Of a stretch of DNA of 64,000 nt, positions 3,426 to 63,933 are shown piece by piece. Position numbers and translations under genes: made by a program. Position 1 is the stretch's first letter; each line of letters starts with the position of its first letter. Below the pieces are notes generated by a model. It was given only the letters and a program-made list of their open reading frames with translations, had not been told where the DNA came from and did no database searches. Origin of the DNA: Dendrobates tinctorius (Eukaryota); assembly GCF_039654945.1 (NCBI RefSeq), contig NW_027362003.1, forward strand, positions 1 through 64,000, in the 5' to 3' direction.

Positions 3426-4643
3426 TCACTGGCCACTTTATTAGGTACACCATGCTAGTAACGGGTTGGACCCCCTTTTGCCTTCAGAACTGCCTCAATT
3501 CTTCGTGGCAGAGATTCAACAAGGTGCTGGAAGCATTCCTCAGAGATTTTGGACCATATTGACATGATGGCATCACACAGTTGGCGCAGATTTGTCGGCT
3601 GCACATCCCTGATGCGAATCTCCCGTTCCACCACATCCCAAAGATGCTCTATTGGATTGAGATCTGGTGACTGAGGAGGCCATTTGAGTACAGTGAACTC
3701 ATTGTCATGTTCAAGAAACCAATCTGAGATGATTCGAGCTTTATGACATGGCGCATTATCCTGCTGAAAGTAGCCATCAGATGTTGGGTACATTGTGGTC
3801 ATAAAGGGATGGACATGGTCAGCAACAATACTCAGGTAGGCTGTGGCGTTGCAACGATGCTCAATTGGTACCAAGGGGCCCAAAGAGTGCCAAGAAAAAA
3901 TTCCCCACACCATGACACCACCACCACCAGCCTGAACCGTTGATACAAGGCTGGATGGATCCATGCTTTCATGTTGTTTACGCCAAATTCTGACCCTACC
4001 ATCCGAATGTCGCAGCAGAAATCGAGACTCATCAGACCAGGCAACGTTTTTCCAATCTTCTACTGTCCAATTTCGATGAGCTTGTGCAAATTGTAGCCTC
4101 AGTTTCCTGTTCTTAGCTGAGAGGAGTGGTACCCAGTGTGGTCTTCTGCTGCTGTAGCCCATCTGCCTCAAAGTTCGACGCACTGTGCGTTCAGAGATGC
4201 TCTTCTGCCTACCTTGGTTGTAACGGGTGGCAATTTGAGTCACTGTTGCCTTTCTATCAGCTCGAACCAGTATGCCCATTCTCCTCTGACCTCTGGCATC
4301 AACAAGGCATTTCCGGCCACAGAACTGCCGCTCACTGGATTTTTTTTCTTTTTCGGACCATTCTCTGTAAACCCTAGAGATGGTTGTGCGTGAAAATCCC
4401 AGTAGATCAGCAGTTTCTGAAATACTCAGACCAGCCCTTCTGGCACCAACAATCATGCCACGTTCAAAGGCACTCAAATCACCTTTCTTCCCCATACTGA
4501 TGCTCGGTTTGAACTGCAGGAGATTGTCTTGACCATGTCTACATGCCTAAATGCACTGAGTTGCCGCCATGTGATTGGCTGATTAGAAATTAAGTCTTAA
4601 CACACAGTTGGACAGGTGTACCTAATAAAGTGGCCAGTGAGTG
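3423..4643 (-). mobile_element. Complete Tc1/mariner DD36E (Incomer-type) transposon, 1221 bp
   Basis: Perfect 29-bp TIRs cactcactggccactttattaggtacacc, TA on both sides, one intact transposase ORF. Confidence 0.95.
3455..4495 (-). CDS. Intact Tc1-family transposase (346 aa, DD36E)
   Basis: N-terminal HTH region, [16 protein letters not shown]...[11 protein letters not shown]; 36 residues counted between the second D and E. Confidence 0.95.
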
Positions 4644-9970: not shown

Positions 9971-10676
9971 GGTATGTTTTTTGGTGCATCGGGAAAAATG
10001 GCATGAAACTCTGACAACATTGTTTAAAGCTGTGAACTAGGTATCAGGAATGCTTCCAGGAGCGATCCCCATGATGTCCCTGTGTCATTTGAGCAGTGTT
10101 TCCATCATTTTCTGACGTTTTTAGATGTTAAAAGGACCCAAGGGGGGATTGCGGTAAAAATGCTCGGGTCACCCATAGACATTACATTGGGCTCGTTGTT
10201 CTGTCCGAGTACCCGAGTATTCCAATTTGCTCGAATCGACCAATGAGCACCCGAGCATATTGATTATCAGATTTCAACCAAAGTGCAGTGTACACAGAAG
10301 TCTGTCAAACAGTGGTTTAGGCAGAGCTCAGCATTCAGATAACTGTTAGAGCTCCATCAGATGAGACAGTGATTTTATCAAAATAACAGCAAGAAATCCA
10401 GTGAGTGGCATATTGCTTGAATAAGGGTCTCTGCCCCTGCATTATGCTGCTTTCAGATGGGGTAGAAAAAAACTGGCAACAGATTTCCTTTAAAAAGGGG
10501 TTGTCCAGTAGTGGAAACAATCTTTAAAGCTATAGCCTTATTTGAAACTGCAAGGTAGCTAGAGCCCTCGTAAAGTAAAAACACTCGTCCATATATACTG
10601 TATATTTATTTTAGTTTTATTTTTGTGAGGGATATTGTGTACCTGATTATTTTTTTACCAATATTCAATCTATATT

Positions 10677-11312
10677 TGTCATGATCCCAGTGCAGGTTTT
10701 TGAGCGGCACGTCAGGGGTTAGTATCTGGAGCTCAGTGCAGGTTTTGACCTGCACACCTGAGGTTAATGATTGTGGCCTCTCTTTGGTTCTGGGAGAGCT
10801 TCTTAAACCCCTGGGAAGCTCCAATCCCTGCCAGTTATACTTTTGCCTTTGGCCGAGTGTGGTGACCTCTGTGTGCCTGTTCGTTGTTATAGCTTGTTTA
10901 TATGGTTCTGACCCGGTTCTGTTCCCCGTTGTGAGTTTGCCTGTTGATTCTGTACTGCGCTACCCTCTCTGTGTATGACTCATTGCCTGTGATCTGACTA
11001 CGCTCTGCTCTCCCCTCTTGTACCTTGCAGCTATTTCTGTGTATGACTCATTGGCTACGTCCTGACTATCCTCTCTGTCTATGCCCCTTGGTAACTTTGT
11101 CTCGCAGTTACCCTGCTAGGAGTTCTCTTGCAGCTCCTAGCTCTCTGGAGCTTAGGCCACGCCCCTAGTAGTCACGTGCTTCAGGTCCTGCTGTTCTGAA
11201 GTACGCATCTACTCGGCTGCTGCCCGCTCCACAGGTATGTTTGAGCACAGTTCGCTTTACTCAGGACTCGCGCACTGGCTCAGTGAGCAAGTTCAGTGCG
11301 GTGTTCCTGACA
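10677..11312 (+). mobile_element. Solo LTR related to the 9284-9970 LTR
   Basis: TGTCATGATC...GTGTTCCTGACA; 5-bp TSD ATATT on both sides. Confidence 0.88.
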
Positions 11313-11829
11313 ATATTCATGTTTAAATGTAAAATTCTTAATTTGTAAAACTATCATTTTGAAAAGGTGTGGGGGAGAAGCTGCCCGAGAGAATTTGTTT
11401 GCTTAGTGTACAAGTCTGATTACCCAAATAAGTCACCTTAAGTGTAAATTATATATCAACTCCCAAAATTTCTCTTCTCATAGCGATATAAGATTTCTCA
11501 GTCTTTTGCATAGTGTAAGATTTTTATCCCTTTGAGAAAGAGTTTTAATCATTCAAAAGGGGATAATCAGAATAAGTCCTGACAATACTCAGACGTTTTG
11601 TTGGTGATTCTTTTTTCTGCTGTTTTCCTTGAGAAGATCTTCTCTGTCTTTAAGAAAGTCTGATGCTTGTTCTGCTGCTGAAAATGTTTGTGTTCTTCCT
11701 CCAGGTAAAAACACTTTAAGATTCGCCGAGAATTGTAATGAGAAGCGGGTTCTCTTCTATACTAGCTCAGTGCATATTCCACTAAAGACGCGTCTTTCTT
11801 TGTTACTTCCACCGAGTAGTCACTGAAAA

Positions 11830-12115
11830 TTAACGCTCTACGTCCATCGAGCACCAGGGGTGGAGATGATTTTCTGTACCGTTGTAAGATGTCCACTTTG
11901 TCTGGCTCAGGTATTTCGCAGTACCAGGCCCGGGCTTATAAGCAGGGGATTCTTGTGGAGGTGGTGGTGGTGGGCCGACTCTGTGAGCGCATTTCACCTT
12001 CAATGGTGTATTAAGGCCCAGAGCGTTTGGTAGGTCTAGTGTGCATATACTTGTAAGCTGGCTACAGGTCATAGATTCTGGTAAACCCATAATCACAAGA
12101 TTGCTTCTGTTCTCC
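11830..12115 (-). mobile_element. Degraded L1 ORF1 fragment
   Basis: NLVIMGLPES...KCAHRVGPP resembles L1 ORF1 RRM motifs. Confidence 0.55.
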
Positions 12116-12429
12116 AGAACATCATATGCAGCAAGATCACATCTTTAATATGCATTTAATTCATTTATTTGCTGATATAAATTTATTCAGATGAAAGTAA
12201 AATTCTCTCTCAAATTGGCACCGGCCGCGCCTGCGCAGTAGCATCTATTGGATCACCAATCTTGGAGGAGACAATTTTTTTTTCTCTAACAAACCGCCGG
12301 CGCCTGCCTGCTGAATGTGATTTTTTTTTCAAAACATATAGTCAGTGTGTAAAATAGGGGGCAGATCACTGAGGGTATGAAAAGCTAAGAAGAGCACCAC
12401 ATGAAGCCTCCCCACAGGCCCGCCCCGGA

Positions 12430-12900
12430 GTGGAAAGAGATGAAAACATTCTCCACAAGAATTGGCCTGTACTAAAAACAGACCCAATTCTGGCAGCACA
12501 ATTACCAAAAAATCCCCTTATAACGGCCAGGAGGGGTAGGAGTCTGAAGGACATGTTACTGAGGAGCCACTATACTGCCAAGGTGTCCAATCCCTTCACC
12601 TCTTCTGAAAGTAAACCGAGACGGGCTGTTACCCCTTTGGTGACTGTCGGGCCTGTGAAAATATCATCAGGAGTACAGAATTTATGTCCTCTGATGGGTC
12701 GTTATCTTGACATTTTAAGGTTTTTCATGGATGTGATACGAAAACTCTAACGGTAAGGGGGATTGATTGTGTTAATGGGGGAATTAGGGGTTGTGATTTA
12801 AAACAGATATTGGCACAATTAGAATGCCAATGGATCAGTCATTTGGAATCCATGGCCCCCCAAATGCTTAACTGAAAAATGAAGCTTTCTCCCATTTCTT
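12430..12900 (+). mobile_element. Degraded Penelope-like fragment
   Basis: ILHKNWPVLKTDPIL...ITARRGRSLKDMLLRSHY, homologous to the other PLE linkers in this window. Confidence 0.7.
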
Positions 12901-14175
12901 TGAATAATCCATTAACATCAACAATGTCCATTGTATAGGGAATATTCAAGGTTCCTGATATCTCTGCGCTTTTATTTTAATTGTGTGTTTTTTGTCTGTT
13001 TGTAGCTGATACATTATTGAAGATTTATCTTTTCCTTATGGCTATTCATGAAATGTATGTGTGATATGGGATTCTTGTGTGACCATCATATGAGGACCCC
13101 TCTGGTGTCAGGATGAACACTTCTGAACACTTCATCTAGAACGCCATGTTATTGGTTGACACAGTAATGATAGTGTTGTTGATGTACTCTTGTATATATA
13201 GCTTTTTACATTTTTGCACATATGCACCTTAATTATATATTTTTTTAAATGCCGCACTTTATAATGCTATGGTATATTAGTGGATTCCAATACAATAATG
13301 TTGTTTTCTCTATTTGAGTATATTAAGCACATGTGCACTTTATTATACCTAATATTACCCATTGTGTGACATACTTTCATTAATGTGACTAGTGGGTATG
13401 ATTTTACACTGGCACTTGTAATATCTGTTGTTTTCATTATCTAATATGGTGATTTATTTTACCCCACTAATAATGGTAGACTCCATGGGACTCCTTAAAC
13501 ATGTCCGCTGGCTGAGAGTTCACTCCTGAACGCTGGTCCGTCCTTCCTGGAATCCAACTTGACAACGCACCTGTCTGTGACGCCATCGGGAGATTTCCCC
13601 GGACGTGCACTTTAGATATATCCATATGAGCCACCATTACACATTACCTCTCTTAGGATAAGTATATATAGAGAAGCTATGGATGTACTTGACTCATACT
13701 GATAACTTTTTGTCTGCTGTGATTATTTTCCTGTCTTTTGAGGTGATGTATGTTTATCTGCTGGATTTATAATATCCTTTATATACTTTCAATTGTTCCT
13801 CTGTTCTATGAGAGCCCAAGTCTGTGAGTGCTCCCCAGGTGACACTTGTTGTTTCTTTCTTGATGTACAGCCTGTATATATTTTCTTTATTACTGATTTT
13901 GATTAAATAAGAAACATATATTTGTTTATATTTATGAAGTCAGCATTCAATTTTTTCTTCAGTTTCATTTATTATACCCTGGAGACCAGTGAACAAAAGC
14001 ACAAGAGGGAGGACACAGACTGAGTCTGGGCCCTCCCTCTTGTGCTTCTGCTCACTGGATCCCTCACAACAGTGAGGACAGTAATGCTCTGATGGCGGTC
14101 CTGTCCACACATAAAAGTATAAAATAAAGACTCTGACACATCATGGAAAGTTTAAATAGTGGGAAGTTTATTATA

Positions 14176-14476
14176 NNNNNNNNNNNNNNNNNNNNNNNNN
14201 NNNNNNNNNNNNNNNNNNNNNNNNNNNNNNNNNNNNNNNNNNNNNNNNNNNNNNNNNNNNNNNNNNNNNNNNNNNNNNNNNNNNNNNNNNNNNNNNNNNN
14301 NNNNNNNNNNNNNNNNNNNNNNNNNNNNNNNNNNNNNNNNNNNNNNNNNNNNNNNNNNNNNNNNNNNNNNNNNNNNNNNNNNNNNNNNNNNNNNNNNNNN
14401 NNNNNNNNNNNNNNNNNNNNNNNNNNNNNNNNNNNNNNNNNNNNNNNNNNNNNNNNNNNNNNNNNNNNNNNNNNNN
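14176..14476. other. Assembly gap (N run)
   Basis: About 300 N. Confidence 1.
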
Positions 14477-14650
14477 TTATATTATTATTAATTATATATT
14501 TATTATATTATATATATTAATCTATTATATATTTAACATATTTATATTCTATATTTATTATATTATATTAAATTATATTATTATTTATTATATATATTTA
14601 TTTTATATATATTAATATATTATATATTTAACATGTTATATTTATAGTAT
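14477..14650. repeat. AT-rich low-complexity tract
   Basis: Almost entirely A/T, next to the gap. Confidence 0.9.
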
Positions 14651-14845
14651 TTGAGGTTGAAGGGAGACATTAAGTCCATCTAGTTCAACCTATAGCCTAA
14701 CATGTTGATCCAGAGGAAGGCAAAAAAAACCCATGTGGCAAACAGTGCCACATTGGGGAAAAAAATTCCTTCCTGACTCCACATACGGCAATCAGACTAG
14801 TTCCCTGGATCAACGCCCTATCAAGGAATCTAGTCTATATCCCCT
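14650..14845 (-). mobile_element. CR1 LINE 3' UTR fragment
   Basis: Closely similar to the CR1 3' end at about 55620-55830. Confidence 0.8.
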
Positions 14846-14987
14846 GTACACCATACCAGCATACTTCTCTACTTTCTCCAATTCTTCATCCGTCACGTCT
14901 TCTATCTGTTCTTCTAGGACCGTCAGCCATGTTTCTCTTCCAGCCATGTTCTTCTCCTTGTAGGTCCTGCAGCTCTGTTTCCAGGCA

Positions 14988-15044
14988 TCAGTGGATATTC
15001 CTCTCTCTCTTCCATGCCCAGTGGTCAGGGTCTTCTGCCATGAT
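14988..15044 (-). CDS. spdy: Speedy-like coding exon 6
   Basis: ttctag| then IMAEDPDHWAWKRERNIH* (TGA at 14988-14990). Confidence 0.88.
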   Translation of the reverse strand: MMAEDPDHWAWKRERNIH

Positions 15045-17269
15045 CTAGAATAAAATAAGTGATTATAATCAGAGTGTAAAGGGCATATGTCACCATTAAT
15101 CATAATCTAATTTGCATATATTTTAGGCCTGATGATACTGGTGTGTGATGACTGAAAATCCATGGCAGAATGACTTTATAATCACTTATTAAAGTTTTGT
15201 TGCTTGACATTAAAGCAAGCATGTCATGAGTCCAGCTATGGCTGCAGTCATAAAATGCTCTGCCTAATATCAGGATTACATGACCATTTTGACGTGGCTT
15301 TACAGAGTAAGTACAAGTGCCTCATCAGGTCTAAGGGATTTACTTAAGCATACTATTTATATTGTGATCTCTATTTACAGATCAGCTTTATATTATTACT
15401 GTCTATATTACTCACCAGATCACATGTGTCCCGATCCACCCAAGCCCGGAATCCCATCCTGGTGAGCAGAACATTGCGGCATTGTAGCAGTTGGTCCTTC
15501 TTCATCCTCCACTTCCGTCCAAGGGCCCAGCGGTAGATCTTCTGTCGATATCGCACCTCTTCTTGCTCAAACTGGTTGGCTAAAAACCTTGGAGGGAAGA
15601 GAAATGAAACCAAATAAATTACAATCCACTTCAGAAGAAAATACAGACAACAACAACAAATGCCATTATCATGTATTTAGCCGAGTGGCCGAAAAGAGAT
15701 TTTGGTTTTACAATAAAATAAAACAATGTTATTTATAGACGTGAATGTGTAATAATAAAAGAGACTCACAGAGCTGGAAAGAAGAAGGTTCCATATTCTG
15801 AAGATGGCAGTCCTGCTCTCCTGAAGTAAGCGACGACCATGGCGAGGAGATACTGGAGGGAGGAGAAGCCGAGTTAAGGTCCTGTCACACTAAGCGATAT
15901 CGCTAGCAATATCTCTATAACTTGTGACGTTATAGCGATATTGCTAGCGACATCGCGGTGTCTGATACTTACCTACGACCCGCTCTCCCGCTGGTTATCG
16001 CTGATCGCGCGAGAACATCCAGGACTGTTTATCGTCGTCAGCTTCCTGCGGCGCTTCCTGTGGAGAGACGAGCGTGGAGCCGGGCGGGAGGACGCAGGAT
16101 CGCCTAGTGTGACAGGTAAGTAGCGACCCCCGTCCCCAGCGATGTCACTGGTGAGATTTGCCTGTGTGACAGCTCACTAGCCACCACTTAGCGATGTACC
16201 AGCGATCCTGACCGCGTCATATTGCTGGTCGGGATCGCTGGTACATCGCTAAGTGTGACAGCACCTTTAGAGGGATATATAACACAGCACATATCTGTCA
16301 GTAGATTCCTAGGTTTGGTCATATCTGGCCACTATTACATAAGAATAAGCCCTTTATTTCCCTATGATGGATCTTCTCAGATCTGGAGGATTTCTTATCC
16401 TTCACTACAATAATACCTTGTCCGAAATCTTTAGACAGCTGTCCCTGGCTAAAAAACATCTGATGTGTTCTTCTTCTACAAAAATAAGGAAAATAGAATT
16501 ATTTCACTATGAACTTTGTAATGAAATCCTGTTTAATCCTATTAATTCTAAATTAATGGGGTTGTAGGGCTCCTCATCAATGATGGATTATCCTCAGGAT
16601 CGCTCATCAGTGTCAGATTGGTGGAGATTTGGCGCCTGACACCCACTGATCAGATACTGAAGAATTGTCCTAAAGACATGCCATCAGTATTGAGGAGACA
16701 CCAAAGCCCCGACACTGCTCACCACATAGTGTCTGCTGTATCATACTAGGTGTGACTATAAGAGGAGGAGGGAGAACACTTCCCTACATGTTTCTCCACC
16801 ATAATACACATAAAATAGATTATATGACATGTATTTTATATTAATCTAACACTTTGGGTCTGGAAACCTTGGAAGGTGCAATGAGTCTTACCAAGGAGTG
16901 CGGTGAAAGCTGCCCGCTCTTCCGGCTGGGGGATGTCCTCTTCTGTCTTCCTCCTCTTGGCCTCTTCCTGGGCGGCAGACCGTGAGCTGTAATAGAAGAG
17001 GTAGATATTATAGTATTAGGCCTCACGCGCATGGCCGTACTGTGGCTACACATAACTCACATCCTGATGGGTGTTCTCCTCATGGGGATCTGACATTAGT
17101 TTGGAGCTGTACATGGGATAAATATGTGTAGTGGTGGTGTGTAATGGTCACTATGGACTTTCCGGTTTAAGAGTATGGATTGTGATGACCGCAGTGATGG
17201 AACCTCATCTACTTACCACTCCTCTTCATACTGGGCGATCAGTTCTCTCTTCCGCTTCCTCATGGCCAT
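14988..17269 (-). CDS. spdy: Speedy/RINGO-family CDK activator, spliced: join(17217-17269,16892-16986,16417-16475,15770-15852,15416-15587,14988-15044), 172 aa
   Basis: All introns GT-AG with compatible phases. Product MAMRKRKRELIAQYEEECSRSAAQEEAKRRKTEEDIPQPEERAAFTALLEEEHIRCFLARDSCLKISDKYLLAMVVAYFRRAGLPSSEYGTFFFPALFLANQFEQEEVRYRQKIYRWALGRKWRMKKDQLLQCRNVLLTRMGFRAWVDRDTCDLIMAEDPDHWAWKRERNIH* matches the Speedy box (DKYLLAMV..YF.RAG, ALxLAN, WALG, W.RER). Family recognised; exact ortholog not assignable. Confidence 0.92.
15416..15587 (-). CDS. spdy: Speedy-like coding exon 5
   Basis: ccaag|...|gtgagt; encodes FLANQFE...WALGRKW...VDRDTCDL. Confidence 0.92.
15770..15852 (-). CDS. spdy: Speedy-like coding exon 4
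   Basis: ctccag|...|gtgagt; encodes YLLAMVVAYFRRAGLPSSEYGTFFFPA. Confidence 0.92.
15877..16266. mobile_element. PIF/Harbinger-like MITE in a Speedy intron
   Basis: TIRs aggtcctgtcacactaagcgat / atcgctaagtgtgacagcacct with TTA on both sides. Confidence 0.75.
16417..16475 (-). CDS. spdy: Speedy-like coding exon 3
   Basis: tgtag|...|gtatta; encodes EEHIRCFLARDSCLKISDK. Confidence 0.9.
16892..16986 (-). CDS. spdy: Speedy-like coding exon 2
   Basis: acag|...|gtaaga; encodes ...PEERAAFTALL. Confidence 0.88.
17217..17269 (-). CDS. spdy: Speedy-like coding exon 1 (MAMRKRKRELIAQYEEE)
   Basis: Acceptor tttccag at 17284, ATG at 17269, donor GTAAGT; phase fits the next exon. Confidence 0.8.
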
Positions 17270-17535
17270 TCTTACTCTTCTTCCTGGAAACTACCATACA
17301 GCAAAAAGGAAAACCTGAGTATGCAGAGGATGGCGCTTTCTATAGGATCTCTAGTAGAGTAATGCTATCAACCTAATGTGTAACCAAAAACATAACTACC
17401 ACGGCTTGAATTACATGTGCTCCAGTATTGCAGCTTTATTGCCTCGATTGGTATTTAGTTGTAATACCCAACATGACCCACTGACAGAAGTGGCGCTGTA
17501 GCTAGTAAACAAAGCAAACCCTATTTTCTACTTAA

Positions 17536-17925
17536 AGCGCCACTCCAGTGTTTTGTTTTGTTTGTACTGCTGAAGAGGCGATTTAAATGTAAGCCCCCCT
17601 TATACCGACGGTGCTCCGCTGCTGTGGTGCCATCTCGTGCCCGTAACTTCTGACTGGCTGCAAATGAGAAGTTACGTCACAAGATCTCAATGCAAGTCTA
17701 TGAGCGCCAGAACTAGGCTCTCATACAGATGTATTGAAAAGTGACCCCTGCGCCGCTCCATGAAACACTGGAGCTGATGGTAGGTCACTTTTCACCAGAG
17801 ACTGATAGGAACAACACTGGAAAAGGATTAAAGTAGCGACAGATGAGGATGAGGCAGGGGCCAGGAGAATCACATATAATGCACCACTCCTGCGGTGCAC
17901 TAAAGAGAACCGCTGGAGTGGTGCT
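17536..17925. mobile_element. T2/Kolobok-type MITE
   Basis: TTAA|agcgccactccag ... ctggagtggtgct|TTAA. Confidence 0.75.
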
Positions 17926-18444
17926 TTAAAAAAAAAAATATATATATAATGTATATATATAATCGGTTATCTATGTCTAACCAGATTGATTTTATGTCCT
18001 ATGGTAAGAGAAGACTACACATATCTACACTTTACTGACTGCACTGTGACCCGCCATATAAACCTCTGCATATATCCGCTACCTCCCTGTATAGTAACTG
18101 AGGAGCCAGTAACATATTCTTCATATCTCCACTATATGTATTATATAACTATTATATACAGGCTAATAATGGCCATGCACTTCTAAATATTGGATCTGGG
18201 AATTTCTAGGAGAAATATGTGGCCCCGTATTTTTCAGATTAATCTTTACACATCATTATCCACATTGTAAATATTTACTCAGAATCCCCATATTTTATCC
18301 CATTTATCCATTATCACCCCGTTATCTATATTTGGGTCTTTATGGTGAAATCATTTCCTTTTTTCTATGTGTTGCTTCCAGTATAGATCCCAACTGTCAG
18401 TATCCGGGATGAGATAAGTCGGCAGTTTACTCCTCACACAATGA

Positions 18445-18680
18445 TTCTCACCTCTGTAGAGCGGCCGGTGGCGGCTGTCTCTCCCAATCAGCAGGTAACG
18501 ATCCGGGTATCAATGCAAAAAGTGTCGCTTCTAGGAATCAATAAGGAGCCGGTCTCTTCTCTAATAGAGCAATCGCAGACTGGCACCAACTGACGTTTTT
18601 TTTCTTTCTTTGAATTCAAATCCTGCGATGTGATTGGTTGATGGTTGAGACACATGATGCATGCAGCGCTAAATTTAAAG
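18445..18680 (-). promoter_or_regulatory. Probable non-coding first exon and promoter of the Speedy-like gene
   Basis: Minus-strand donor CAGAG|GTGAGA at about 18450; MYB-like CAACTG at 18587-18592; palindromic double CHR TTTGAATTCAAA at 18609-18620; CCAAT on the minus strand at 18633-18637. Confidence 0.5.
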
Positions 18681-19214
18681 GGACAGCGCATTCTAGTAAT
18701 GTTATAAGCTGATGCAGTGTATGACTTTTATCTCTATCTTTGTAGTTTCCCTCTTTACTCCAGTGAGTGTTATTTGGGGAAGTTGTCATGTTATTCCATT
18801 TATTAACTGATGTTTGGGAAATGGCAGCAGTGAAAGCCCCATGTAATAATGATGATACTAAAGTCATGTGATGAGAGAAGTGTGATGTGTAACATGTTCA
18901 CTAGATCGTCCAATGGAAGAGAGTAATTGTCATCTGCTTTCTTGCTCCCTGTAAAGTCATTATTTAAGCCCCTTAATGACAAGGTGAATTTTCATTTTTG
19001 CGTCTTTGTTTCTTCCTCTTCTTTTCCAAAACTCATAACTTTTTTTATTTTTCTGTCCACATAGCCCTATGACTGCTTCTTTATTGGGGGGAGAAGTTGT
19101 ACTTTTGAATGACACCATTCATTTCACCACATAGTGTACAGGAAAACATAAAAAAATTCCAAGCAAGGAGAAATTGTAAAAGCAAAAAATAAATTCTCAC
19201 ATTGCTTTTAGAAC

Positions 19215-20190
19215 TGTAGGATGCATTATACTGTATTAACTGTTGGGTGCATTATACTGTATGGACTATAGGGTGCATTATATTGTGTGGATAACTATGT
19301 GGTGAATTATACTATGGAAAAGACACCAGGCTGCATTATACTGCATGGATTATTGGGTGCATCATGCTTTATGGACCATCTGGTGCTTTATGCTGTATGG
19401 ATTATGGGGTGCATTATACTGTATGGATGACTATGGGGTGCACTATACTATGCAGAGGACAATGGGGTACATTATACTATATGGATTATTGGGTGCATTA
19501 TGTTGTATAGACTATGGGATGCATTATACTTTGTGGACTATGGGGTGCATTATAATATACAGAGGACAGTTAGAGTGATCAATGAGTGGAACAGGCTGCC
19601 ACGAGAAGTGGTGAGTTTTACTTCAATGGAAGTCTTCAAACAGAGGCTGGACAGATATCTGTCTGGGATGATTTAGCGAATCCTGCTTTGAGCAGGGGGT
19701 TGGACCAGATGGCCCAGGAGGTCCCTTCCAACTCTGCGATTCTATGATTCTATGACTAATGGGGTGCATTATATTATACAGAGGACTATGGGTGCATCAT
19801 ACTATACAGATGACTATGGGTGCATTATGTTGTATAAACTATGGGGTGCATTATGATGTATGGACCATGTATTGCATTATGTTGTATGGACTATGGGGTG
19901 CATTATGCTGTATGAACTATGGGATGCATTATACTATACAGAAGACTTTGGGGTGCATTATACTGTATAGAGTATGGGGAGCATTATACTATACATAGGA
20001 CAATGGAATGCATTATGCTGTATGGAGTACGGGGTCCATTATACTATACAGAGGACTATGGAATGCTTTATGCTGTATGAAGTATGGGGTGCATTATACT
20101 ATACCGAGGACTATGGGGTGCATTATACTCTAGGGAGCATGTGGTGCATTCAATTATGAAGAGGACAAAGTGATGCATTATACTGTGTGA
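19215..20190. repeat. Degenerate minisatellite (26-29 bp unit, ggactatggggtgcattatactgtat)
   Basis: Many tandem degenerate copies. Confidence 0.9.
19568..19757 (+). mobile_element. CR1 3' end fragment inside the minisatellite
   Basis: Encodes WNRLPREVV-type RT tail and ends in (ATTCTATG)n. Confidence 0.85.
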
Positions 20191-20735
20191 TCATTGTGTG
20201 AGGGTCACAGGTGATCATACAATGTAGGGGACATCATACTTTTCTGGGTGAGTTGTGGGTTGGGGTGCAGTAGGGTCATCATACTGTGCGTGTGGACGGT
20301 ACTGTGGAGGAATTCACTGTGGTGGCATCTTACAGTGCCTGTGGGACACTTTTTTGACATCATACTTTGAGTGCAATCATAGGGCTCCAGTACGAGGAAT
20401 ATTAGGGGACACACAGTACCAAACAGGTGCAGAAATAGGGACACATACGGCAGCAGTGGCTCAGCATTGGGTTATCAGCAGGATAAGGAGTTTGTGCAGG
20501 TCCGGGTTAGATGTGGATGATGCCTGAAATGTGAGAAATCATATGTATTTTTGTTGTAATCTCTGCAGCCGAGTCCTGGCTGGAGCAGTTGTCATGTCGG
20601 TCTGGGCCCGATGAAAAAGACGGGAAAAGTAAATGACTCCAGCAGAAAGAACGTCAGCTGTAACTCAGCATCCATAACTGTACTGTAATCCCTTATATGT
20701 TCTGCAGGACTGGTACTGGTATCTACCACTATATA

Positions 20736-22306
20736 CAGTGGTGGAAATAAGTATTTGCCCCCTTGCTGATTTTGTAAGTTTGCCCACTGACAAAGACATG
20801 AACAGTCTGTATTTTTAAGGGTCGGTTAATTTTAACACTGAGAGACAGAATATCAAAAATAAAATCCAGAAAATCACATTGTATAAATTACATAATTTTA
20901 TTTGCATTTTGCAGTGAGAAATAAGTATTTGATTCCTACCACCCATTAAGAGTTCTGGCTATTACAGACCTGTTAAACGCTCCAAATCAACATCGTCACT
21001 TGCATTAAAGACAGCTGTCTTACATAGTCACCTTTATAAAAGACTCCTGTCCACAGACTCAATCAGTCAGACTTTAACCTCTACAACATGGGCAACACCA
21101 AAGTGCTTTATAAGGATGTCAGGGACAAGATCATAGGCCTGCAAAAAGCTGGAATGGGCTAAAAAAACATAAGTAAGACACTGATTGAGCAGGACACAAC
21201 TGTTGGTGCAATAGTAAGAAAATGGAAGAAATACAAAGTCACCGTCAATCGACATCGATTTAGAGCACCATGCAAAGTCTCACCTTGTGGGGTATCCTTA
21301 ATCATAAGGAAGGTGAGAGATCAGCCTAAAACTACATGGAGGGGAACTTGTTATTGATCTCAATGCAGCTGGGACCACAGTCACCAAGAAAACCATTGGT
21401 AACACATTACGCCATAAAGATTTCAAATCCTGCAGTGCAGGCAATGTCCCCCTGCTTAAGAAGGCACATGTGCAGGCCTGTCTGAAGTTTGCCAACGAAC
21501 ACCTGGATGCTTCTATGAGTGATTGGGAGAAGGTGCTGTGGTCAGACGAGACAAAAAATGAGGTCTTTGACTAACTCAACTCACGGTGTTTGGAGGAAGA
21601 GAAATGCAGCCTATGACCCAAAGAACATACTGTCAAGCATGGAGGTGGAAACATTATGTTTTGGAGGTGTTTCTCTGCTAAGGGCAAAGGACTACTTCAC
21701 TGCATCAGTGGGAGAATGGATGGAGCCATGTACCGTAAAATCCTGAGTGACAACCTCCTTCCCTCTGCCAGGACATTAAACATGGGTCGCGGCTGGGTCT
21801 TCCAGAAAGACAATGACCCAAAACATACAGCCAAGGCAACAAAGGAGTGGCTGAAAACGAAGCACAATAAGGTCATGGAGTGGCCTAGCCAGTCTCCAGA
21901 CCTTAATCCCATAGAAAACTTATTGAGGGAGTGAAGCTCTGAGTTGTCAAGTGACAGCCTCAAAATCTTAATGATTTAGAGATGATCTGCAAAGAGGAGT
22001 GGACCAAAATTCCTCCTGACATGTGCGCAAACCTCATCATCAACTACAAAAAACTTCTGACTGCTGTGCTTGCCATCTAGGGTTTTGCCACCAAGTATTG
22101 TCTTGTTTACCAGAGGGATCAAATACTTATTTCTCACTGCAAATTGCAAATAAATTTATATAATTTATACAATGTGATTTTCTGGATTTTATTTTTGATA
22201 TACTATCAATGCTAAAATTAACGTACCCTTAAAATTATAAACTGTTTATGTCTTTGTGAGTAGGCAAACTTACAAAATCAGTAAGGGATCAAATACTTAT
22301 TTCCCT
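20736..22306 (+). mobile_element. Degenerate Tc1-like transposon with ~200-bp IR/DR-type TIRs
   Basis: TA|cagtggtggaaataagtatttg... with an inverted copy at about 22115-22306 (tip truncated); decayed transposase at 21088-22100 ([11 protein letters not shown]...SPDLNPIEN). Confidence 0.9.
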
Positions 22307-22307
22307 T

Positions 22308-23600
22308 GTGGTACTCGCAGGTTCCCAGGACGCAGTGACGAGGCGCAAGACGGTTTAGTGCTTTTAGTATTAACGTTTATAGGCCTAGAGGTAACTGTCC
22401 TCAGTTGTAGCCTAACCAACCAAAGAGGTAACAAGAATTGCCCTCGCAGGGGCTCTATACAAGCAAACACAAACGGGGTAGAACACGACTACGTCCGGCA
22501 AGAGCCGGTCACTATAGGGCCGCGGTATGGCCGACTACGGGTCCTTAATTATATAGCCAACTTAGCCGTCCAGATGTCCCTCGCCGTTCGGGATGGTGGT
22601 CTTTCAGCGTAGCAGTCGCTGGGCCCAGTTGCTGAAGCGTTGACAAATTCTTCGAGCGCTCCGGCGCTCCGATGACACTGGAGCACCACAGGCCCCAGAG
22701 GAGTCCTTGGGCGGATGGGCCACAGCCCCCGGACTGGGGTAAGCGGCAGCGATGTGGGGTGGCGTGGGGCAGGCAACATGCACAGCTACGACGGAGAATC
22801 TGCGGCGAGCAACGGCCCCGCCCTTGCCGCGAACCGTAGCGGGACAGTGGTGGCCGGCGGTGGCACTGGACTTGCCGCGGCCACGGGTAAGAGCAGGGCG
22901 GCCGCGGGTGGCGGGGCACAGGCCGCAGCCGCGGGCCGGAGCGAGGCGACAACGGCCGTGAGCGACCGCGGGCGGGCCGCAAGCAGAGGCGAGGCGGCAG
23001 CAGCCACGAGCGACCGTGGGCAGGCCGCAGCCACGGGCAGAGGCGAGGCGGCCGCGGGCAGAGGCGAGGCGGCCGTGGGCAGAAGCGGGGTAGCGGCTCT
23101 CGGACGGTCATCTGGGCGCTGTCCCTCTGATGTGTTCCTGGAGCGTCTCTCCTGGCTCTGATAAGTCGCTCTGGTTCTCTGTCGCTCCCACGGTCTCCTG
23201 CTGCTACTGTCCCAGTCTACTGACTCACGGTGACTAGCGTTCCCCGCCCCTTTTATACTGGCTCCTCCCCCAGCCCATCTGTCCATCTCAATGGTCCGTC
23301 CCTGAACTCTGTCCCCCAGGAACAATTTCCCCCGGAACCTAGGTGACGGTCCCCTTGGTTCCGGCCTGGACACTCGGCAGGGGCCATTCTTCCCACACCC
23401 TCACTGTAGTCATCATATGACGGTACTAGCTGTGTTGGTCTTTGTATAGAGTCTTTTTTTTTAGTAGTAGTAGGGTCATCTACTGAGGTTCTCTTACATC
23501 CACTATTAATGTACGCCACCATAGTTGTAATCAGGGTTTCCTGGTTAGGGGCAACCTCCGAAGTTTCTTCCACCATGAATCAAACCCCTAGCTACGCCTC
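22308..23600 (-). mobile_element. Unclassified GC-rich insertion with Ala/Pro-rich broken ORFs, possibly a non-autonomous LTR element
   Basis: Begins TGTGG where the Tc1 TIR is cut; short internal repeats (gcagaggcgaggcggcc); no recognisable catalytic motif. Confidence 0.35.
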
Positions 23601-23859
23601 TGGTTTAAACTGATAGTATTCCTTTGAGTACTAGTGTAACTTGTCTAAAAGGCAAAACAAAAGCTGTTTAGTAGCTGTTTGATAATTAAATACTGATCCC
23701 TTGGTTGTTGCTCAGTCCCAGTCTGGCACCAGCCCTCCCAATGGCCCGGCGGAGGTTGGCATTTCCTTTCCTTTACGCCAATAAAAGAACTAAAAGAAAA
23801 AATATCAAGGCTATCATGTGATACCAATAATAATACACCGTTCTACAGCCAAATTGGTT

Positions 23860-24312
23860 CAGGGACAACAATAGGTGAACCTAACTAATTTTGTACTGCT
23901 GAAAACGAATATGATGCTTAAATGTACTGATTGACTCTAATTTCCAAGATCCAGAGGAGATTGTAATTACTTATGACATCTTTCATGCAGGCTTATTGAA
24001 AATTTGTGTCTTTATTTGTTCATCATCATTATTGCATTGTTAGTAACTCGTCTATCACATCATCTACTTAGTCTATTGCGCATTCAATATTCTATCATCT
24101 TAGGGTGACCTATCAAAAACGCCAACTCAGCTCTGATGACATAATCCTAATCACAGTTCCATCACCTACTTTTATAAATGCTCTCTGTGTAAGGTATACA
24201 GTTTTATGATTTCTTAGCTCAGTTTCTTAGCATATTGCGGAGAAATCACTTTTGTGTCACAAAGATGAAACTTGACTGCCATGATATGGCTGCCGAATAG
24301 ATTTAGACAAGT
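23860..24312 (+). mobile_element. Probable 5' part of the Chapaev3-like DNA transposon continued at 31112
   Basis: Joined to 31112+ through a 16-bp direct repeat; subterminal tgctgaaaacgaatatga loosely mirrors tcagattttcattcagga near 32380. Confidence 0.4.
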
Positions 24313-26450: not shown

Positions 26451-29400
26451 TTTTTTTTTTTGAACCAAAGATTTTTTATTATATTCAAATGCCGTTTACA
26501 TTACATGCAGGCAAAAGCCTATGCAAAATCCAGAACATATACAAAAAAAAATATACGACATTCGAGTTACCCCCCTCATAAGAAAGCCCCCCCTCCTCCC
26601 TCCTCCCTCGCCCCCCCAGCCTAATTGCCATAAGACATTCTCAATAAGGTTGACTCTACTGCAACCACTTAGACCAAAGTTTTTCAAAATGCACCTCTTT
26701 GTGTCGTCGTCTATAAACTCTTTCTTCTAACCGAACTACATTGTTCACTCGTACAATAAATTCCCCAACCGTCGGGGGCTCGGCATCGATCCATTTTTGT
26801 GCGATCAGTTTACGGGCAACATATAAAAGTTTTGCTATAATTGGCTTATATGCATTTCCCACAGACACTTCCTCCACATACCCCAACACACACGTTATGG
26901 GGTCCCTTCCCACTCCACATTGGTATATCTTCTCAATTTGTTCAATAACCTCCCCCCAATATGAGGAGAGTCTTGGGCAGGACCAGAGCATGTGTAACAT
27001 TCCCGCGGGCTCAACTCTACATCTTGGACATTCCGCATTGTCCCTCAGGCCCATTTTTTCCATAAGTTCCGGGGTTTTATACGTTCTATGTATGATGTAC
27101 AGCTGCGATATCCTACCCGGTTCACTCAATGAAAGTTTGGGTATATATTCTAATATAGTGTCCCATATTTCATCTTCTATCTGTCCCACTTCCCTCTCCC
27201 ATTTAGCTTTTGCCTTTAGGGGAAACCTAATCATGTGGGAGTACAATAGGTCCCGGTAAATGGTGGAAATAACTCCCCTCGTACCCCCAGACGCGCACAC
27301 ATAATCCAACACAACATCTTTTTGTACCGTCATATGTGTCATATGTTTCTGTGCCTGGAATGCATGCCTGAGACCGAGGTATCGAAACTCCCCGCTGCTC
27401 GAGAGCCCAAACTCCTCTTTTAATACAGAAAATGGCTTGATTTCCGTCCCCTCCAGTAACTGCCACATATATTGCAATCCTTTCCTCTCCCAATCACCAA
27501 AATCCTTCAATTTACACAGTTCTGATAGGCTTGCATTATCCCAAATAGGCGTGTATATCGTCAATTCCCCAATTCCTCTGAGACTCTTAATATTTTGCCA
27601 TATTTTAAGCATTAACCTAAAAGTAGGTAGTCCTTTTCCATGACTCACAAAGCATCCCGCCTCCAGACTCTGTATTAATATTTTTTTATTGGTCAGTTGG
27701 GCCAAAATTTTTCCCATAACATTTAAATTTCCCTCCTCTTGCCAACCTCTGAAGTGCTGCGCTTGCATTGCTGTAAAGTATATCCATGGGTTTGGTGCCG
27801 CCAGCCCTCCTTCCTCCTTCCCCCTTTGGAGCACTTCCAGTTTAAGTTTTGCTTGTTTTTTCCCCCAAATTAGTTCCCTAAAAATAGTATTAATTTTATA
27901 AAATCTTCTCTTTGGGATCCACACTGGGGTATTATGGAGAATATACACCAACTGAGGCATCATTATCATTTTAAGTAGGTTCGTCCTCCCTACTATTGAC
28001 AATACTAGTTTACACCATGCTGTCATCTTGGCTTTAAGTTTAACTAATAAAGGATCCAGGTTTAATTCGAGAAATCTAGATATAGGCATTGATACCCATA
28101 TTCCGAGGTATTTAAATTCATTAACTACTTTCAGCTGTCCATCCACCCCACCTATATGTGGACATCCCAATTCCCGGTCAATCCCCATGATACATGATTT
28201 GTCCCAATTAATTCTCAATCTGGAAAAGGATCCAAATCTTTCTATAAGGGCCATAACCTTAGTCAACGAATCTCCCCCATCTTGCAGAAAAAGGAGTATG
28301 TCATCTGCATATAGGGCAATCTTTTCCTCCAGATTCCCATATCTGAAGCCCTGTATTTCTGTGGAGTTATGAATTTTAATCGCTAATGGCTCCATCGCCA
28401 CCGCAAATAGCAACGGCGATAAGGGGCATCCCTGACGAGTTCCTCTGAACAACCCAAACGACTCCGAGGTCTCCCCGTTAATCCTAATGTACCCTTTTGG
28501 ATCCGCGTATAATAATTTAATCCAGGAAATAAATCTATGTCCGAATCCCATTAACTTCAATACTGCCCATAGATAATTCCACTCTACCCTATCAAATGCC
28601 TTTCGTGCATCCAGCGAGGCCACCACCCTTTCCCCTACATTATCTGCCGGGAGTTGTATATTAAGAAAGAGTCTACGTAGGTTAATGGCGGTAGATCTAT
28701 TTTGTAAAAAACCCGATTGGTCTGGATGTATCAATTTTTGAACAACCCCAGACATTCTTATCGCCAACATTTTAGCTAATATTTTAACGTCTGACGTCAA
28801 TAACGAGATGGGTCTATAGGATTCAACGGATGAGGCATCTTTCCCCTCCTTAGGAATAACCACAATTACGGCCTCCCTCATAGACCTCGGCAAAGCCCCT
28901 CTCTCCGCTGCATCTTCAAATACCTCCTTAAGTTTAGGTGCTACGACCTCTATTAGTTCCTTATATGCTTCTCCCGGGATACCGTCAGAGCCAGGTGACC
29001 TATTATTTGCCAATGACAGAATAGCCTTCTCCACTTCCTCTACAGTAAATAATTCTTCCAGATTCTGTTTATCAGTATCATCTAACTTAGGTATCTCTAT
29101 CTCTTGTAAATATCTATCCATTTCTTGTTCTCTAACCCCCAATTCTGAGGTATATAATTTTACATAGTATTCCCGGAAACATTCCAATATCCCAGAGGTG
29201 GCTTTATGAGTTACCCCATCCTCCTTGACAATTTTATATATCTGTGTGGACCCTTTCTGCGCCGCAGATATCACTGACAGTAAGTGTCCCACCTTTTCCC
29301 CTTCGTCATAGAACAGTGCTCTCTGGAATGCCCTTTTCTTGTCTATCCCTTGTAAATATAACTTATTTACTTCTTCTTGTGCTTCTTTTAATGCCTTTTT

Positions 29401-29452
29401 AGTGGCGATACTGGGCCTACGTATCATTTCCTCCTCTGCCCTGCTCAATCTG
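26451..29452 (-). mobile_element. 5'-truncated L1-clade LINE inserted in the Penelope RT
   Basis: Poly(A) tail (T run at 26451-26461), G-rich 3' UTR, TSD TATTGGAACAA at 26440-26450 and 29453-29463. Confidence 0.92.
26656..29452 (-). CDS. L1 ORF2, 5'-truncated (RT and C-terminal Cys-rich domain, no endonuclease), ~930 codons uninterrupted
   Basis: SPGSDG, YRPISLL, LDARKAFDRVEW, GTRQGCPLSPLLF, LYADD, CPRC...HMLWSC. Confidence 0.92.
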
Positions 29453-29733
29453 TATTGGAACAATTTTTTAATTCATTAAATAAAAATTCTTATTTTTTAA
29501 AATTTTCTATGACCACCAGTTCAAAATAAATAAACTTTTTAGACTTAAACATTTTTGTAGAAAATAACACTATTGGCTCACAACTATATCATAAGCCTAC
29601 TGATTCTAATAATTTCATTTCACTTGATAGTTGCCATTTACCTAGCTGGCTGCTAAATGTTCCAAAAAGTCAACTAATTAGAGCTCATCGTAACTGTTCG
29701 AAAAGGGAGGATTTTAATAAAGAGGCAGAGATA

Positions 29734-33269: not shown

Positions 33270-34949
33270 TAACTTCTGTCAGGGAGTGTATGTCACATAT
33301 CCATGTTACGTAAATAAAAGCTTATAACCTGACGTTAAATTCATCCATTGGTTGTATAAATTATTCTTTTGAAAGCTGAAACCCTCCGAAATGTGGTTTA
33401 GGTTAAGAAAATAAATTGCCATAAATGCAGAAATATTGATCATATAATGGACACAGAATGGTCAGATTTTGGCAAGACAAAAGTTTTGTAACCTGGTCAT
33501 ATAATGCACCCAATCCTAGTTTACATCCTCACCTGTGACAGTAAATGATCGGTTAATTAGTGGGTGTGTATAAAAAGAAACCCAGCACCCCAGACCTTCA
33601 CTTGAGCTGCAACTTGAGCTCTAACAACATGCCAAAAATCCACCCTGCGACCAAAGCCTGGATTATCAAGAGGCTGAAGACCAGATCCACTGCAGAGGTG
33701 GCTGGCACCTTTAATGTGTCTCAGCGTCAAGTACAAAGAATTAAAAAAAGATTAGAAGAGACTGGAGATGTGTTTGACAAGCCCAAGTCCGGCAGACCCT
33801 GCAAGACAACTGCACAGGAGGTTTGTTGGTTAGAAAATCCAAAGCAAGCCCTTCTTCCACTGCAGCAGAGCTCCAACAGGCCTGGTCACCTCAAGTCCCT
33901 GTGTCAGCTAGAACAGTTTGTAGGATTCTGTCTCGAAATGGCCTCCATGGTCGAATCAGTGCCCAGAAGCCAGCACTAAACAAAAGGCAAATAAAAAACC
34001 GTGTGGCATTTGCAAAGTTCCACAGCCTGCTAAACAGATGGACGCTGGAAAAGTGGCAGAAGATGGGTTTCTCTGATGAATCTTCAGTAGAATTACACCA
34101 CAGTAGCCACAAATACTGCAGGAGACCTACTGGAGCCCGTATGGATCCAAAATACACCCAGAAAACAGTTAAATTGGGTGGTGGAAAGATCATGGTCTGG
34201 GGTTACATTCAGTATGGGGGTGTGCGAAACATTTGCAAGGTGGAAGGCAATATTAATAGCCTAAAATATCAAGAAGTATTAGCTACCTCTTATATTCCAA
34301 ATCATAAAAGGGGTCAAATTCTGCAGCAGGATGGTCCTCCATCTCATACATCCATCTGTACAACAAAGTTCCTCCAGGCAAAAAAGATCAAGGTGCTCAA
34401 GGACTGGCCAGCCCAGTCACCAGACATGAACATCATTGAGCATGTTTGGGGTAGGATGAAAGACGAAGCTTGGAAGACAAAACCAAAGACTCTAGATGAA
34501 CTCTGGGAGGCATGTACGACTGCATTCTTTGCTATTCCTGATGACTTCATTAATAAATTGTATGAATCATTGTTGAACTGCATGGATGCAGTCCTTCAAG
34601 CTCATGGAAGTAACACAAAATATTAAATATGACTCTAATAGCACCACAGCTTCATTCACCAATGTGATGCAACATATATTTGTATATTAAGTTAATTATT
34701 TGTTTGAATATCACATTACTTTCTGTGGCCGACAAAACTTTTGTCTTGGTAAAATCTGACCATTCTGTGTCCATTAAATGATCAATATTTCTGCATTGAT
34801 GGCAATTTATTTTCTTAACCTAAACCACATTTCGGAAGGTTTCAGCTTTCAAATTAATAATTTATACAACCAATGGATGAATTTAACGTCAGGTTATAAG
34901 CTTTTATTTCCATAACATGGATAAGCGACATAACTTCTGTCAGGGAGTG
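33270..34949 (+). mobile_element. Tc1/mariner DD35E (Traveler-type) transposon with ~220-bp TIRs
   Basis: Long inverted repeats at about 33270-33490 and 34730-34949; transposase gene inside. Confidence 0.9.
33629..34626 (+). pseudogene. DD35E transposase with a single frameshift near 33820
   Basis: MPKIHPATK...GRP, FSDESS, QQDGPPSH...SPDMNIIEHVW; 35 residues between D and E. Confidence 0.88.
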
Positions 34950-62924: not shown

Positions 62925-63933
62925 TACTCGAGGGTGAATGCCATCAGGGCCTGGTGATTTGTCAATTTTAATCTTACTAAGGCGGTTCTGCACTTCTTCC
63001 TGGGTTAGGAAGGTAATACTTAATGGGGAGTTTACATTATCACTCTGCATTTCCCCTGGCAAATCCTTTTCCTGTGTGAACACTGTTGAGAAAAAAGTAT
63101 TTAAAACATTTGCTTTTCCCACATCGCTCTCTATCATTGTTCTTTAAAAGGCCGACACCATCAATTTTAATCTTTTTACTGTTTATATAATTAAAGAATA
63201 GTTTGGGGTTTGTTTTACTTTCCTTAGCAATGAGTCTCTCAGTTTCCACTTTTGCTAAATGTATTTGTTTTTTACACATTTTATTTTTTTCTCTATAACT
63301 TTTTAATGCTTCTTCATTGCCTTCTTGTTTTAGCTTCCTAAATGCCTGGTTCTTGTTATTTATTGCCCTTTTTACATCCTTATTTAGCGACATTGGTGTT
63401 CTCCTGTTCCTAGCCCTTTTATTTCTGTACGGTATGGCTAGCTCGCAGTGGGTGTGTAAAACTGATTTAAATATTTCCCATTTATTTTCTGTGCTCCTAT
63501 TTTTGAGGACATTGTCCCAATCAATTTGGCGAAGGTCCTCTCTAAGCTGATCAAACTTTGCTTTCCTGAAATTCAGCGTTTTTGTAACCCCCTTCCAGGG
63601 CACCTTACTGAAGGACAAGTGGAATTGTATTATATTGTGGTCACTGTTCTCTAGGTGCCCATCGACTCGTACTTCTGTTATTCTATCTGGCCTGTTGCTT
63701 AAAATTAAGTCCAGAAGGGCTGTCCCTCTAGTTGGGCCGTGCACAAGTTGTGACAGATAATTATCCTTGGTCAGTGACAGAAATTGGTTTCCTTTCTGAG
63801 ATACACAGGTTTCAGTTTCCCTGTCTATGTCGGGGTAGTTGAAGTCCCCCATAATAATCACCTCATTGTGATTTGCTGCTTTGTCTATTTGTTTCAATAA
63901 TACATTTTCAGTGGTTTCTGTTTTTCCTCCCAT
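62925..63933 (-). pseudogene. CR1 ORF2 endonuclease/linker portion, N-terminally deleted and frameshifted
   Basis: IMGDFNYPDI, PTRG..LLDL, SDHN. Confidence 0.88.

Follow-up and report, generated by a model that had tools for sequence, protein, structure and literature searches.

A six-exon Speedy/RINGO gene copy in Dendrobates tinctorius, a member of a multi-copy Speedy family of frogs

Gene structure at the locus

The stretch of DNA analysed in the present study, referred to below as the window, comprises 64,000 nucleotides of the poison frog Dendrobates tinctorius (NCBI RefSeq assembly GCF_039654945.1, contig NW_027362003.1, positions 1 to 64,000). Between positions 17269 and 14988 it carries a real, intact six-exon gene encoding a 172-residue protein of the Speedy/RINGO family. 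The exons, all located on the minus strand, add up to 519 nt, corresponding to 172 codons and a TGA stop codon; each of the five introns is bounded by GT and AG, and codons are split at the junctions of exons 1 and 2 (TG/C, Cys), 2 and 3 (G/AA, Glu), and 4 and 5 (CT/G, Leu). Exon 1 (17217–17269, 53 nt) begins with the ATG at 17269–17267 and encodes MAMRKRKRELIAQYEEE together with TG, the first two bases of Cys18; an in-frame TAG lies eight codons 5′ of this ATG, and an AG acceptor precedes it by 14 nt. Exon 2 (16892–16986, 95 nt; acceptor ttacag, donor gtaaga) encodes SRSAAQEEAKRRKTEEDIPQPEERAAFTALL, in which an acidic/basic linker (KRRK) is followed by the first part of the Speedy box (PEERAAFTALL), and the boundaries of this exon match those of a 203-residue protein model of Ranitomeya imitator (P0034). 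Exon 3 (16417–16475, 59 nt; EEHIRCFLARDSCLKISDK) encodes the first helices of the Speedy box and was aligned, through P0034, to the human sequence FFKLFDDDLIQDFLWMDCCCKIADK. It is followed by exon 4 (15770–15852, 83 nt; YLLAMVVAYFRRAGLPSSEYGTFFFPA), by exon 5 (15416–15587, 172 nt; FLANQFEQEEVRY...DTCDL), which holds the core of the Speedy box in 57 in-frame codons, and by exon 6 (14988–15044, 57 nt including the stop; IMAEDPDHWAWKRERNIH), with the TGA at 14990–14988. The codons TTA and CTA in exon 3, CAA (Gln) at codon 32 of exon 5 and GAG at codon 16 of exon 2 are specific to the window.

A reading of the letters made earlier, without database searches (the sequence-only reading), had proposed six GT-AG exons spliced in phase into a 172-residue open reading frame (ORF), as well as the motifs RKRKR, KRRK and ANQFEQEEVRY; locating the boundaries and translating each exon separately reproduced the model, and all three motifs were found in the translations. 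Phases were checked by arithmetic and by this per-exon translation, and the searches described below employed single exons or stored relatives (P0001, P0003 and P0034) as proxies. The R. imitator protein P0034, which starts with MAMRKRKRELIAQYEEEC, shares all six exons and the N-terminus with the window gene and thus provides independent support for the six-exon model. The gene had also been described as hidden, which holds for the window locus itself, for which the collection searched contained no annotated protein, but not for its relatives, since NCBI already annotates the sister genes.

The predicted protein consists of three parts, namely an N-terminal motif (RKRKRE..YEEE), a short acidic/basic linker and a complete Speedy box. 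The short basic/acidic N-terminus, previously listed among the peculiarities of this copy, is indeed present, but it is typical of the family and not special to the window, the motif being common to Ranitomeya, Hyla and gibbon SPDYE4 (KKKREWSDESEEE).

Speedy/RINGO membership and predicted fold

Profile searches with single exons clearly indicate the relationship of the encoded protein to Speedy/RINGO. Exon 5 alone matches the Pfam Spy1 profile (PF11357) with 44.3 bits (E 2.8e-11, profile positions 60–115) and exon 4 alone with 28.6 bits (profile positions 31–55), so that two exons scanned singly each exceed the gathering cut-off of 25 bits, in agreement with the family assignment made in the sequence-only reading. 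A search with exon 5 further matched two chains of crystallised human Speedy A, 7e34_B and 5uq1_B (E ~6e-7). A comparison of the per-exon translations with P0034 and human Speedy A showed that the Speedy box is complete from its first helix (..AF..L..D.I..FL..D.C.K..DKYLLAM) to its ..HW.W.R.R end, and the alignment covers the whole crystallised core of human Speedy A save for the last ~10 residues. The earlier description of a protein made almost entirely of the Speedy box is borne out.

The fold was assessed by proxy, using P0034, the closest full-length annotated relative, which is 79–89% identical to exons 5 and 6 of the window. AlphaFold modelled the box of P0034 (residues 38–170) with a predicted local distance difference test (pLDDT) score above 90; the tail, which the window protein lacks, scores about 50. 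The model superimposes on the Spy1 chains 7e34_B and 5uq1_B with a template modelling (TM) score of 0.91–0.93 and a root-mean-square deviation of 1.2–1.4 Å, the identity of P0034 to human Speedy A being about 42% over the aligned structure. No second Speedy copy was found within the 64-kb window.

Origin of the missing C-terminal tail

The absence of a C-terminal extension, noted in the sequence-only reading, can be traced to a single event: the protein is tail-less because of an in-frame deletion in the last exon. An alignment of exon 6 from the window, the annotated D. tinctorius loci L001, L002 and L003, and R. imitator contains a single clean 96-nt in-frame gap, which is common to the window and all three D. 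tinctorius loci and is absent from Ranitomeya. The deletion junction lies at 14991..14992 (minus strand), where 96 nt, or 32 codons, have been removed (HSWAIRWFRRNNALPCSLCNIVPLKKEEDANI in R. imitator), and the TGA of the window aligns with the ancestral TAA of R. imitator. The loss of the tail is therefore a derived deletion of the last 32 residues that left the ancestral stop position in place, and it is older than the duplications which yielded the window copy and the three D. tinctorius copies. The deleted segment carries a motif, HHSxAxR...CxLC, conserved from Hydra to man. Mammalian proteins of the SPDYE4 type end at the same point, right after the box, and a tail-less Speedy protein therefore has precedent.

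Sister copies and the duplicated block

A word search with exon 5, limited to proteins of 31–100 residues, revealed the D. tinctorius protein XP_073430293 (99 aa, named ‘speedy protein 1-A-like’), which shows 96% identity across exon 5, has exons 4, 5 and 6 joined exactly at the junctions used in the window and ends at NIH; D. tinctorius proteins of this group end at NIH or NIL. Further D. tinctorius models (XP_073441830 and XP_073441714) and several Ranitomeya models belong here as well. The DNA of the gene region is ~90–98% identical to the D. tinctorius loci and ~85–89% identical to R. imitator. Local blastn comparisons delineate a duplicated block at approximately 9971–24237 that is collinear with L001–L003 at 90–98% identity, introns and flanks included. 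Judging from this collinearity, L001–L003 and the window copy are segmental duplicates of at least 14 kb.

The window copy differs from each of the three annotated D. tinctorius loci, none of which is close enough to be the same locus. Its distinctness also follows from an insertion of ~392 bp in intron 3 (15876–16267), which resembles a miniature inverted-repeat transposable element (MITE) in having 23-nt terminal inverted repeats (AAGGTCCTGTCACACTAAGCGAT / ATCGCTAAGTGTGACAGCACCTT) and internal hairpins. The insertion is private to the window, being absent from all four related loci checked (L001–L004), and is therefore recent. Transposon capture, considered as a means of spread, finds no support: a degraded Tc1/mariner fragment was all that turned up within the shared block of 14 kb or more, and ends resembling those of an element were not seen, which makes segmental duplication the simpler reading. 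The fragment in question, a Tc1/mariner DDE remnant at 21656–21934, is the only other recognisable coding remnant in the duplicated block.

The condition of the related copies varies. L001 has lost exons 1 and 2 by a 5′ deletion, L003 has a TG/A stop at the codon split between exons 1 and 2 (codon 18), and L002 is intact except for two one-codon deletions; in Ranitomeya variabilis, locus L010 has a 1-nt deletion (frameshift) in exon 6, and L009 has CTG instead of the first ATG. The 5′ exons of the window copy are intact, unlike those of two of the three annotated D. tinctorius copies. The disabled sisters indicate that copies of this frog Speedy family often die, and the presence of decaying and intact copies side by side fits birth-and-death evolution, the window copy being among the intact ones. 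In R. imitator, two loci (L004 and L005; CM064362.1, 481.85–481.91 Mb) encode an identical 203-residue protein and form an inverted duplicate pair ~43 kb apart.

Selection on the coding exons

The ratio of non-synonymous to synonymous substitution rates (dN/dS) was estimated by the Nei–Gojobori method, counted per exon on in-frame codons. Between the window and L001 there are 3 non-synonymous and 6 synonymous differences (dN/dS 0.13), and the divergence of exons and introns (2.4% vs 4.0%) does not differ significantly; the comparison with L002 gave 6 and 6 differences (dN/dS 0.26), with exons diverging significantly less than introns (2.5% vs 5.5%, p=0.0065), and that with L003 gave 8 and 6 (dN/dS 0.36; 3.3% vs 4.2%, not significant). 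Against R. imitator, 24 non-synonymous and 10 synonymous differences were counted (dN/dS 0.64; 7.4% vs 10.6%, p=0.036). Exon 1 of the window is 100% identical to that of L002, L003, L009 and L010 and has no coding differences from L004/L005; it is invariant wherever it is present, while introns differ by up to 10.6%. Taken overall, these figures suggest some constraint, but a relaxed one. The sequence-only reading had supposed rapid evolution and had named a ratio near 1 as the mark of a pseudogene; the value of 0.64 against Ranitomeya agrees with the former, and the values of 0.13–0.36 against the close D. tinctorius copies are well below 1.

Subfamily placement

In an IQ-TREE phylogeny (LG+C20, 46 sequences), in which the close relatives P0034 and P0003 served as stand-ins for the window, the frog family and mammalian E4/E7 proteins formed one clade (100/97), with Speedy A of teleosts and allies in a separate clade (100/98) and Speedy C (turtle, chicken, lungfish and bat) also standing apart. 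A FastTree phylogeny of 207 sequences likewise joined the frog family with mammalian Speedy E and placed exon 5 of the window beside P0003 inside the frog family (99*). Judging by these trees, the frog family is the amphibian counterpart of mammalian Speedy E (formerly B) and not an ortholog of Speedy A (X-RINGO); it follows that the NCBI names ‘1-A-like’ and ‘1-B-like’ reflect best hits and not orthology. The copy is also not an ordinary single-copy ortholog, as it belongs to a multi-copy family placed apart from Speedy A. The supposition that it represents a lineage-specific paralog has to be amended: the set of copies is young, but the family itself is frog-wide, ranging from Ascaphus to Hyla, and as the counterpart of mammalian Speedy E it does not group beside SPDYA or SPDYC.

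Distribution in frogs and expression

Many annotated relatives were found in Hyla, Dendropsophus, Bufo, Rhinoderma, Leptodactylus, Eleutherodactylus, Pseudophryne, Mixophyes, Hyperolius, Pelodytes, Rhinophrynus and Engystomops, and an exhaustive search added Ascaphus, Discoglossus, Pelobates, Leptobrachium and Xenopus laevis. The searches revealed many copies in at least 20 genera of frogs. Clustering at 90% produced single clusters with up to 23 sequences. Hyla and Mixophyes have many near-identical copies on one chromosome-scale record, and Ranitomeya also has several on one record. The expanded germline family suspected in the sequence-only reading thus exists as a family of copies: D. tinctorius has at least three more, and Hyla, Mixophyes and Ranitomeya have several annotated copies each. 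The one broad survey found, a preprint, assigned a single Speedy gene to most non-mammals and included Xenopus tropicalis as the only frog in its phylogeny (preprint 10.1101/354886). Literature searches found no published account of a Speedy expansion in frogs; the frog-wide expansion of E-type Speedy may therefore be undescribed, though it is visible in NCBI annotations.

Three Logan contigs of 1–1.3 kb (from SRR5149482, SRR5149423 and SRR5149460) contain an uninterrupted 223-residue ORF of the family (P0028), nearest to Rhinoderma proteins; they represent spliced transcripts, which means that the family is expressed in at least one frog. In small sequencing runs, shares of 0.16–0.32 were obtained, values that repeats or paralogs of 95% identity could explain just as well. 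In mice, meiotic tissue shows high expression of the Speedy B (E-type) genes, for which no knockout has been described (PMC6900092). By analogy with mammalian Speedy E/B, any expression of the window copy would probably be gonadal.

The acidic loop and a possible mode of action

In human SPY1, the acidic loop at residues 134–139 (EEDEEE) touches the T-loop of the cyclin-dependent kinase (CDK), and D136 mimics phosphorylated T160; the D136A substitution abolished the activation of unphosphorylated CDK2, while phosphorylated CDK2 was still activated (PMC13570426). The equivalent of human E134–E137 in the alignment is E-Q-E-E, encoded at 15557–15568 (minus strand). The loop of the window protein reads F-E-Q-E-E-V-R, with acidic residues at three of six loop positions and with Glu at the position of human D136 in either alignment register, so that the phosphomimetic Asp of Speedy A is not matched. 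Among the relatives, P0001 and P0008 have FEQED, and Ranitomeya and Hyla have FEED without the extra Gln. The acidic patch ANQFEQEEVRY had been called diverged, and it is so in two respects, the replacement of the D136-equivalent Asp by Glu and the extra Gln. Column statistics for the D136 position (212 family members) depend on the alignment register and were not used.

The window protein would be expected to adopt the cyclin-box-like Speedy fold, as other Speedy proteins do; its box would bind CDK1 or CDK2, and its acidic loop would hold the T-loop of the kinase in the active position. By homology, the binding of CDK1/CDK2 should be a property of this protein; activation may be one as well. 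Glu may substitute for Asp; the change makes the activation of unphosphorylated kinase less assured but leaves family membership unaffected. Because the loop is altered, with Glu at the D136 position, activation may be weaker or more dependent on T-loop phosphorylation. The altered loop (E-Q-E-E) and the missing tail represent two places where function may differ.

Surrounding DNA

The surroundings of the gene are dense in transposable elements, as had been supposed, with Tc1/mariner, long interspersed nuclear element (LINE) and Ty3/gypsy remains. Transposon ORFs in the window are located at 3455–4495, 33823–34626, 26656–29463, 49557–52745, 56353–57771 and 63040–63933; they include two Tc1/mariner transposases (HTH_Tnp_Tc3_2 and DDE_3), a LINE-type reverse transcriptase (935 aa), a nearly complete Ty3/gypsy pol (reverse transcriptase, RNase H, integrase and chromodomain; 1062 aa), a further reverse transcriptase and an endonuclease. 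A gap of Ns lies at 14176–14476.

Two arrays of a 26/52–55-bp tandem repeat (unit ~ACTATGGGGTGCATTATACTGTATGG) occupy 19211–19568 and 19751–20190, 2–3 kb upstream of the start codon, and have matches upstream of the D. tinctorius and R. imitator loci. Farther upstream, about 5.5 kb from the gene and within the duplicated block, a GC-rich region (22500–23400, 52% GC) contains GC-rich tandem repeats of 21–48 bp; the long ORFs on both strands of this region gave no Pfam match. The region might serve as a CpG-island-like promoter or, in view of the AG acceptor 14 nt ahead of the ATG, as an untranslated first exon.

Weighing of alternative explanations

The interpretation that best accommodates these data, and which we regard as probable, is that the window holds an intact Speedy gene, one of a set of young duplicates within a frog-wide E-type family, which has lost its tail by deletion and whose role in CDK regulation would follow from homology. 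A narrower claim, that this copy is a working gene, is favoured only slightly over its negation. Several observations weigh against the interpretation or its parts: the tail lost from the window copy is the one with the conserved HHSxAxR...CxLC motif; the key phosphomimetic Asp is Glu beside an inserted Gln; dN/dS against Ranitomeya reaches 0.64 (24 non-synonymous and 10 synonymous differences); a parsimony reading assigns only ~2 synonymous and ~2 non-synonymous changes to the branch of the window copy itself; two of the three sisters in D. tinctorius and one copy in R. variabilis are disabled; the collection searched contains no annotated match to the protein of the window sequence; and long-branch attraction could contribute to the grouping with mammalian E, since the frog family and mammalian E both evolve fast.

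The most serious competitor is a young duplicate, still unbroken but unused, a pseudogene in waiting whose ORF is intact for lack of time; this is possible, although we consider it rather unlikely. With about four coding changes on the branch, an intact ORF of 172 codons is unsurprising even without selection, and the decay of the sisters (the missing exons 1–2 of L001, the TGA of L003, the 1-nt deletion of L010), the non-significant difference between exon and intron divergence against L003 and L001 and the want of an annotated protein in the collection searched would all fit such a state. It sits less well with the integrity of five splice-site pairs and all 172 codons, with dN/dS well under 1 against all three close copies, with exons kept significantly better than introns in the comparisons with L002 and R. 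imitator, and with an exon 1 that is invariant between genera. A different doubt concerns the product. NCBI models for D. tinctorius L002 (P0003) and two R. variabilis models (P0004 and P0009) omit exon 3, which raises the improbable alternative that the main product is an isoform of ~139 residues that starts at an out-of-frame ATG in exon 1, reads exon 2 in another frame and returns to the Speedy frame from exon 4, without the first helices of the box. The skipped-exon models start with T ATG AAG AGG AGT G in exon 1, and their exon 2 reads ..PPRKRPRGGRQK..SGQLSPHSL (L002 9961–11850; L009 3962–5936); the alternative frame is open in the window too (ORF 16841–17053). The two skipped-model loci examined, L002 and L009, have an intact exon 3 with intact splice sites. 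However, the models P0034 and P0048 include exon 3 in the canonical frame, and the canonical frame of exons 2–3 matches the conserved Speedy box of all other animals. A second frame open over 31 purine-rich codons is estimated to occur by chance in about one case in five or more, and for this reason dual coding of exon 2 is not claimed. The skipped models could reflect real exon skipping or a modelling artefact.

The gene would be taken for the ordinary single-copy frog ortholog of Speedy A (X-RINGO, speedy protein 1-A) if one relied on the names of its NCBI sisters, ‘speedy protein 1-A-like’ or ‘1-B-like’, or on the solved structures matched, all of which are Speedy A. The tree makes this very improbable, as it places the family with mammalian E and away from the A clade (100/98), and so do the at least four copies of 90–98% identity in Dendrobates-type genomes, the many copies per genome in other frogs and the identity of only ~42% between P0034 and human Speedy A. 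Least credible of all, to the point of being negligible, is the view that the six-exon model was put together by chance from short ORFs in repeat-rich DNA: that the exons are short (17–57 codons) is the only thing to be said for it, and it conflicts with two exons that independently exceed the Pfam Spy1 cut-off, with the same junctions in annotated proteins of D. tinctorius and R. imitator, and with the conservation of all exons in six or seven related loci.

Significance

The window locus is a new, ordinary member of a known family and, taken alone, matters little, being an unannotated copy of a family already modelled by NCBI. Greater interest attaches to the expansion across frogs, which represents a second, independent expansion of Speedy E beside the hominine one. 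The dendrobatid copies can serve as natural variants, with the tail present or absent and the loop reading FEED, FEQED or FEQEE. A more far-reaching suggestion, which is speculative and on present evidence unlikely, is that frogs independently expanded the E-type lineage to tens of copies per genome, quickly born and quickly dying, in parallel with hominine SPDYE, and that a core-only form arose in poison frogs which, tail-less and with a Glu/Gln change in the acidic loop, still binds CDK1/2 but acts differently. Were this so, that form might, for example, need T-loop phosphorylation like human D136A, or act as a CDK sponge, and germline conflict, such as meiotic drive or sperm competition, would suggest itself as the force behind the repeated Speedy expansions.

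Comparison with known Speedy proteins

The nearest known genes are the dendrobatid ‘speedy protein 1-A/1-B-like’ genes, which are like the window gene in their six exons, splice junctions and N-terminus. The Ranitomeya proteins have kept the 32-residue tail and have the FEED loop, and the window protein has neither; among these relatives, the window copy alone contains the MITE-like insertion in intron 3 and is without a matching annotated protein.

Speedy A (human SPY1/SPDYA; Xenopus X-RINGO/Spy1) resembles the window protein in the Spy1 domain, in the fold predicted for P0034 and in an acidic loop facing the CDK T-loop, which reads EEDEEE (human 134–139) in Speedy A and EQEEVR in the window. 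It differs in having ~100 further residues past the box, where the window protein has none, and in forming a subfamily of its own in the tree.

Mammalian Speedy E (SPDYE4 and primate SPDYE) forms one clade with the frog family. Its identity to P0034 is ~38–40% in the alignment, and its N-terminal extensions are longer than those of the frog proteins, although gibbon SPDYE4 has a basic-then-acidic N-terminal motif similar to that of the frog family. SPDYE4 stops right after the box and is without the HHSxAxR...CxLC tail, which nearly all frog members examined have kept. Mammalian Speedy E has been expanded by segmental duplication, with many pseudogenes (preprint 10.1101/354886); the expansions in frogs and Homininae are independent, and both proceeded through segmental duplication accompanied by many pseudogenes.

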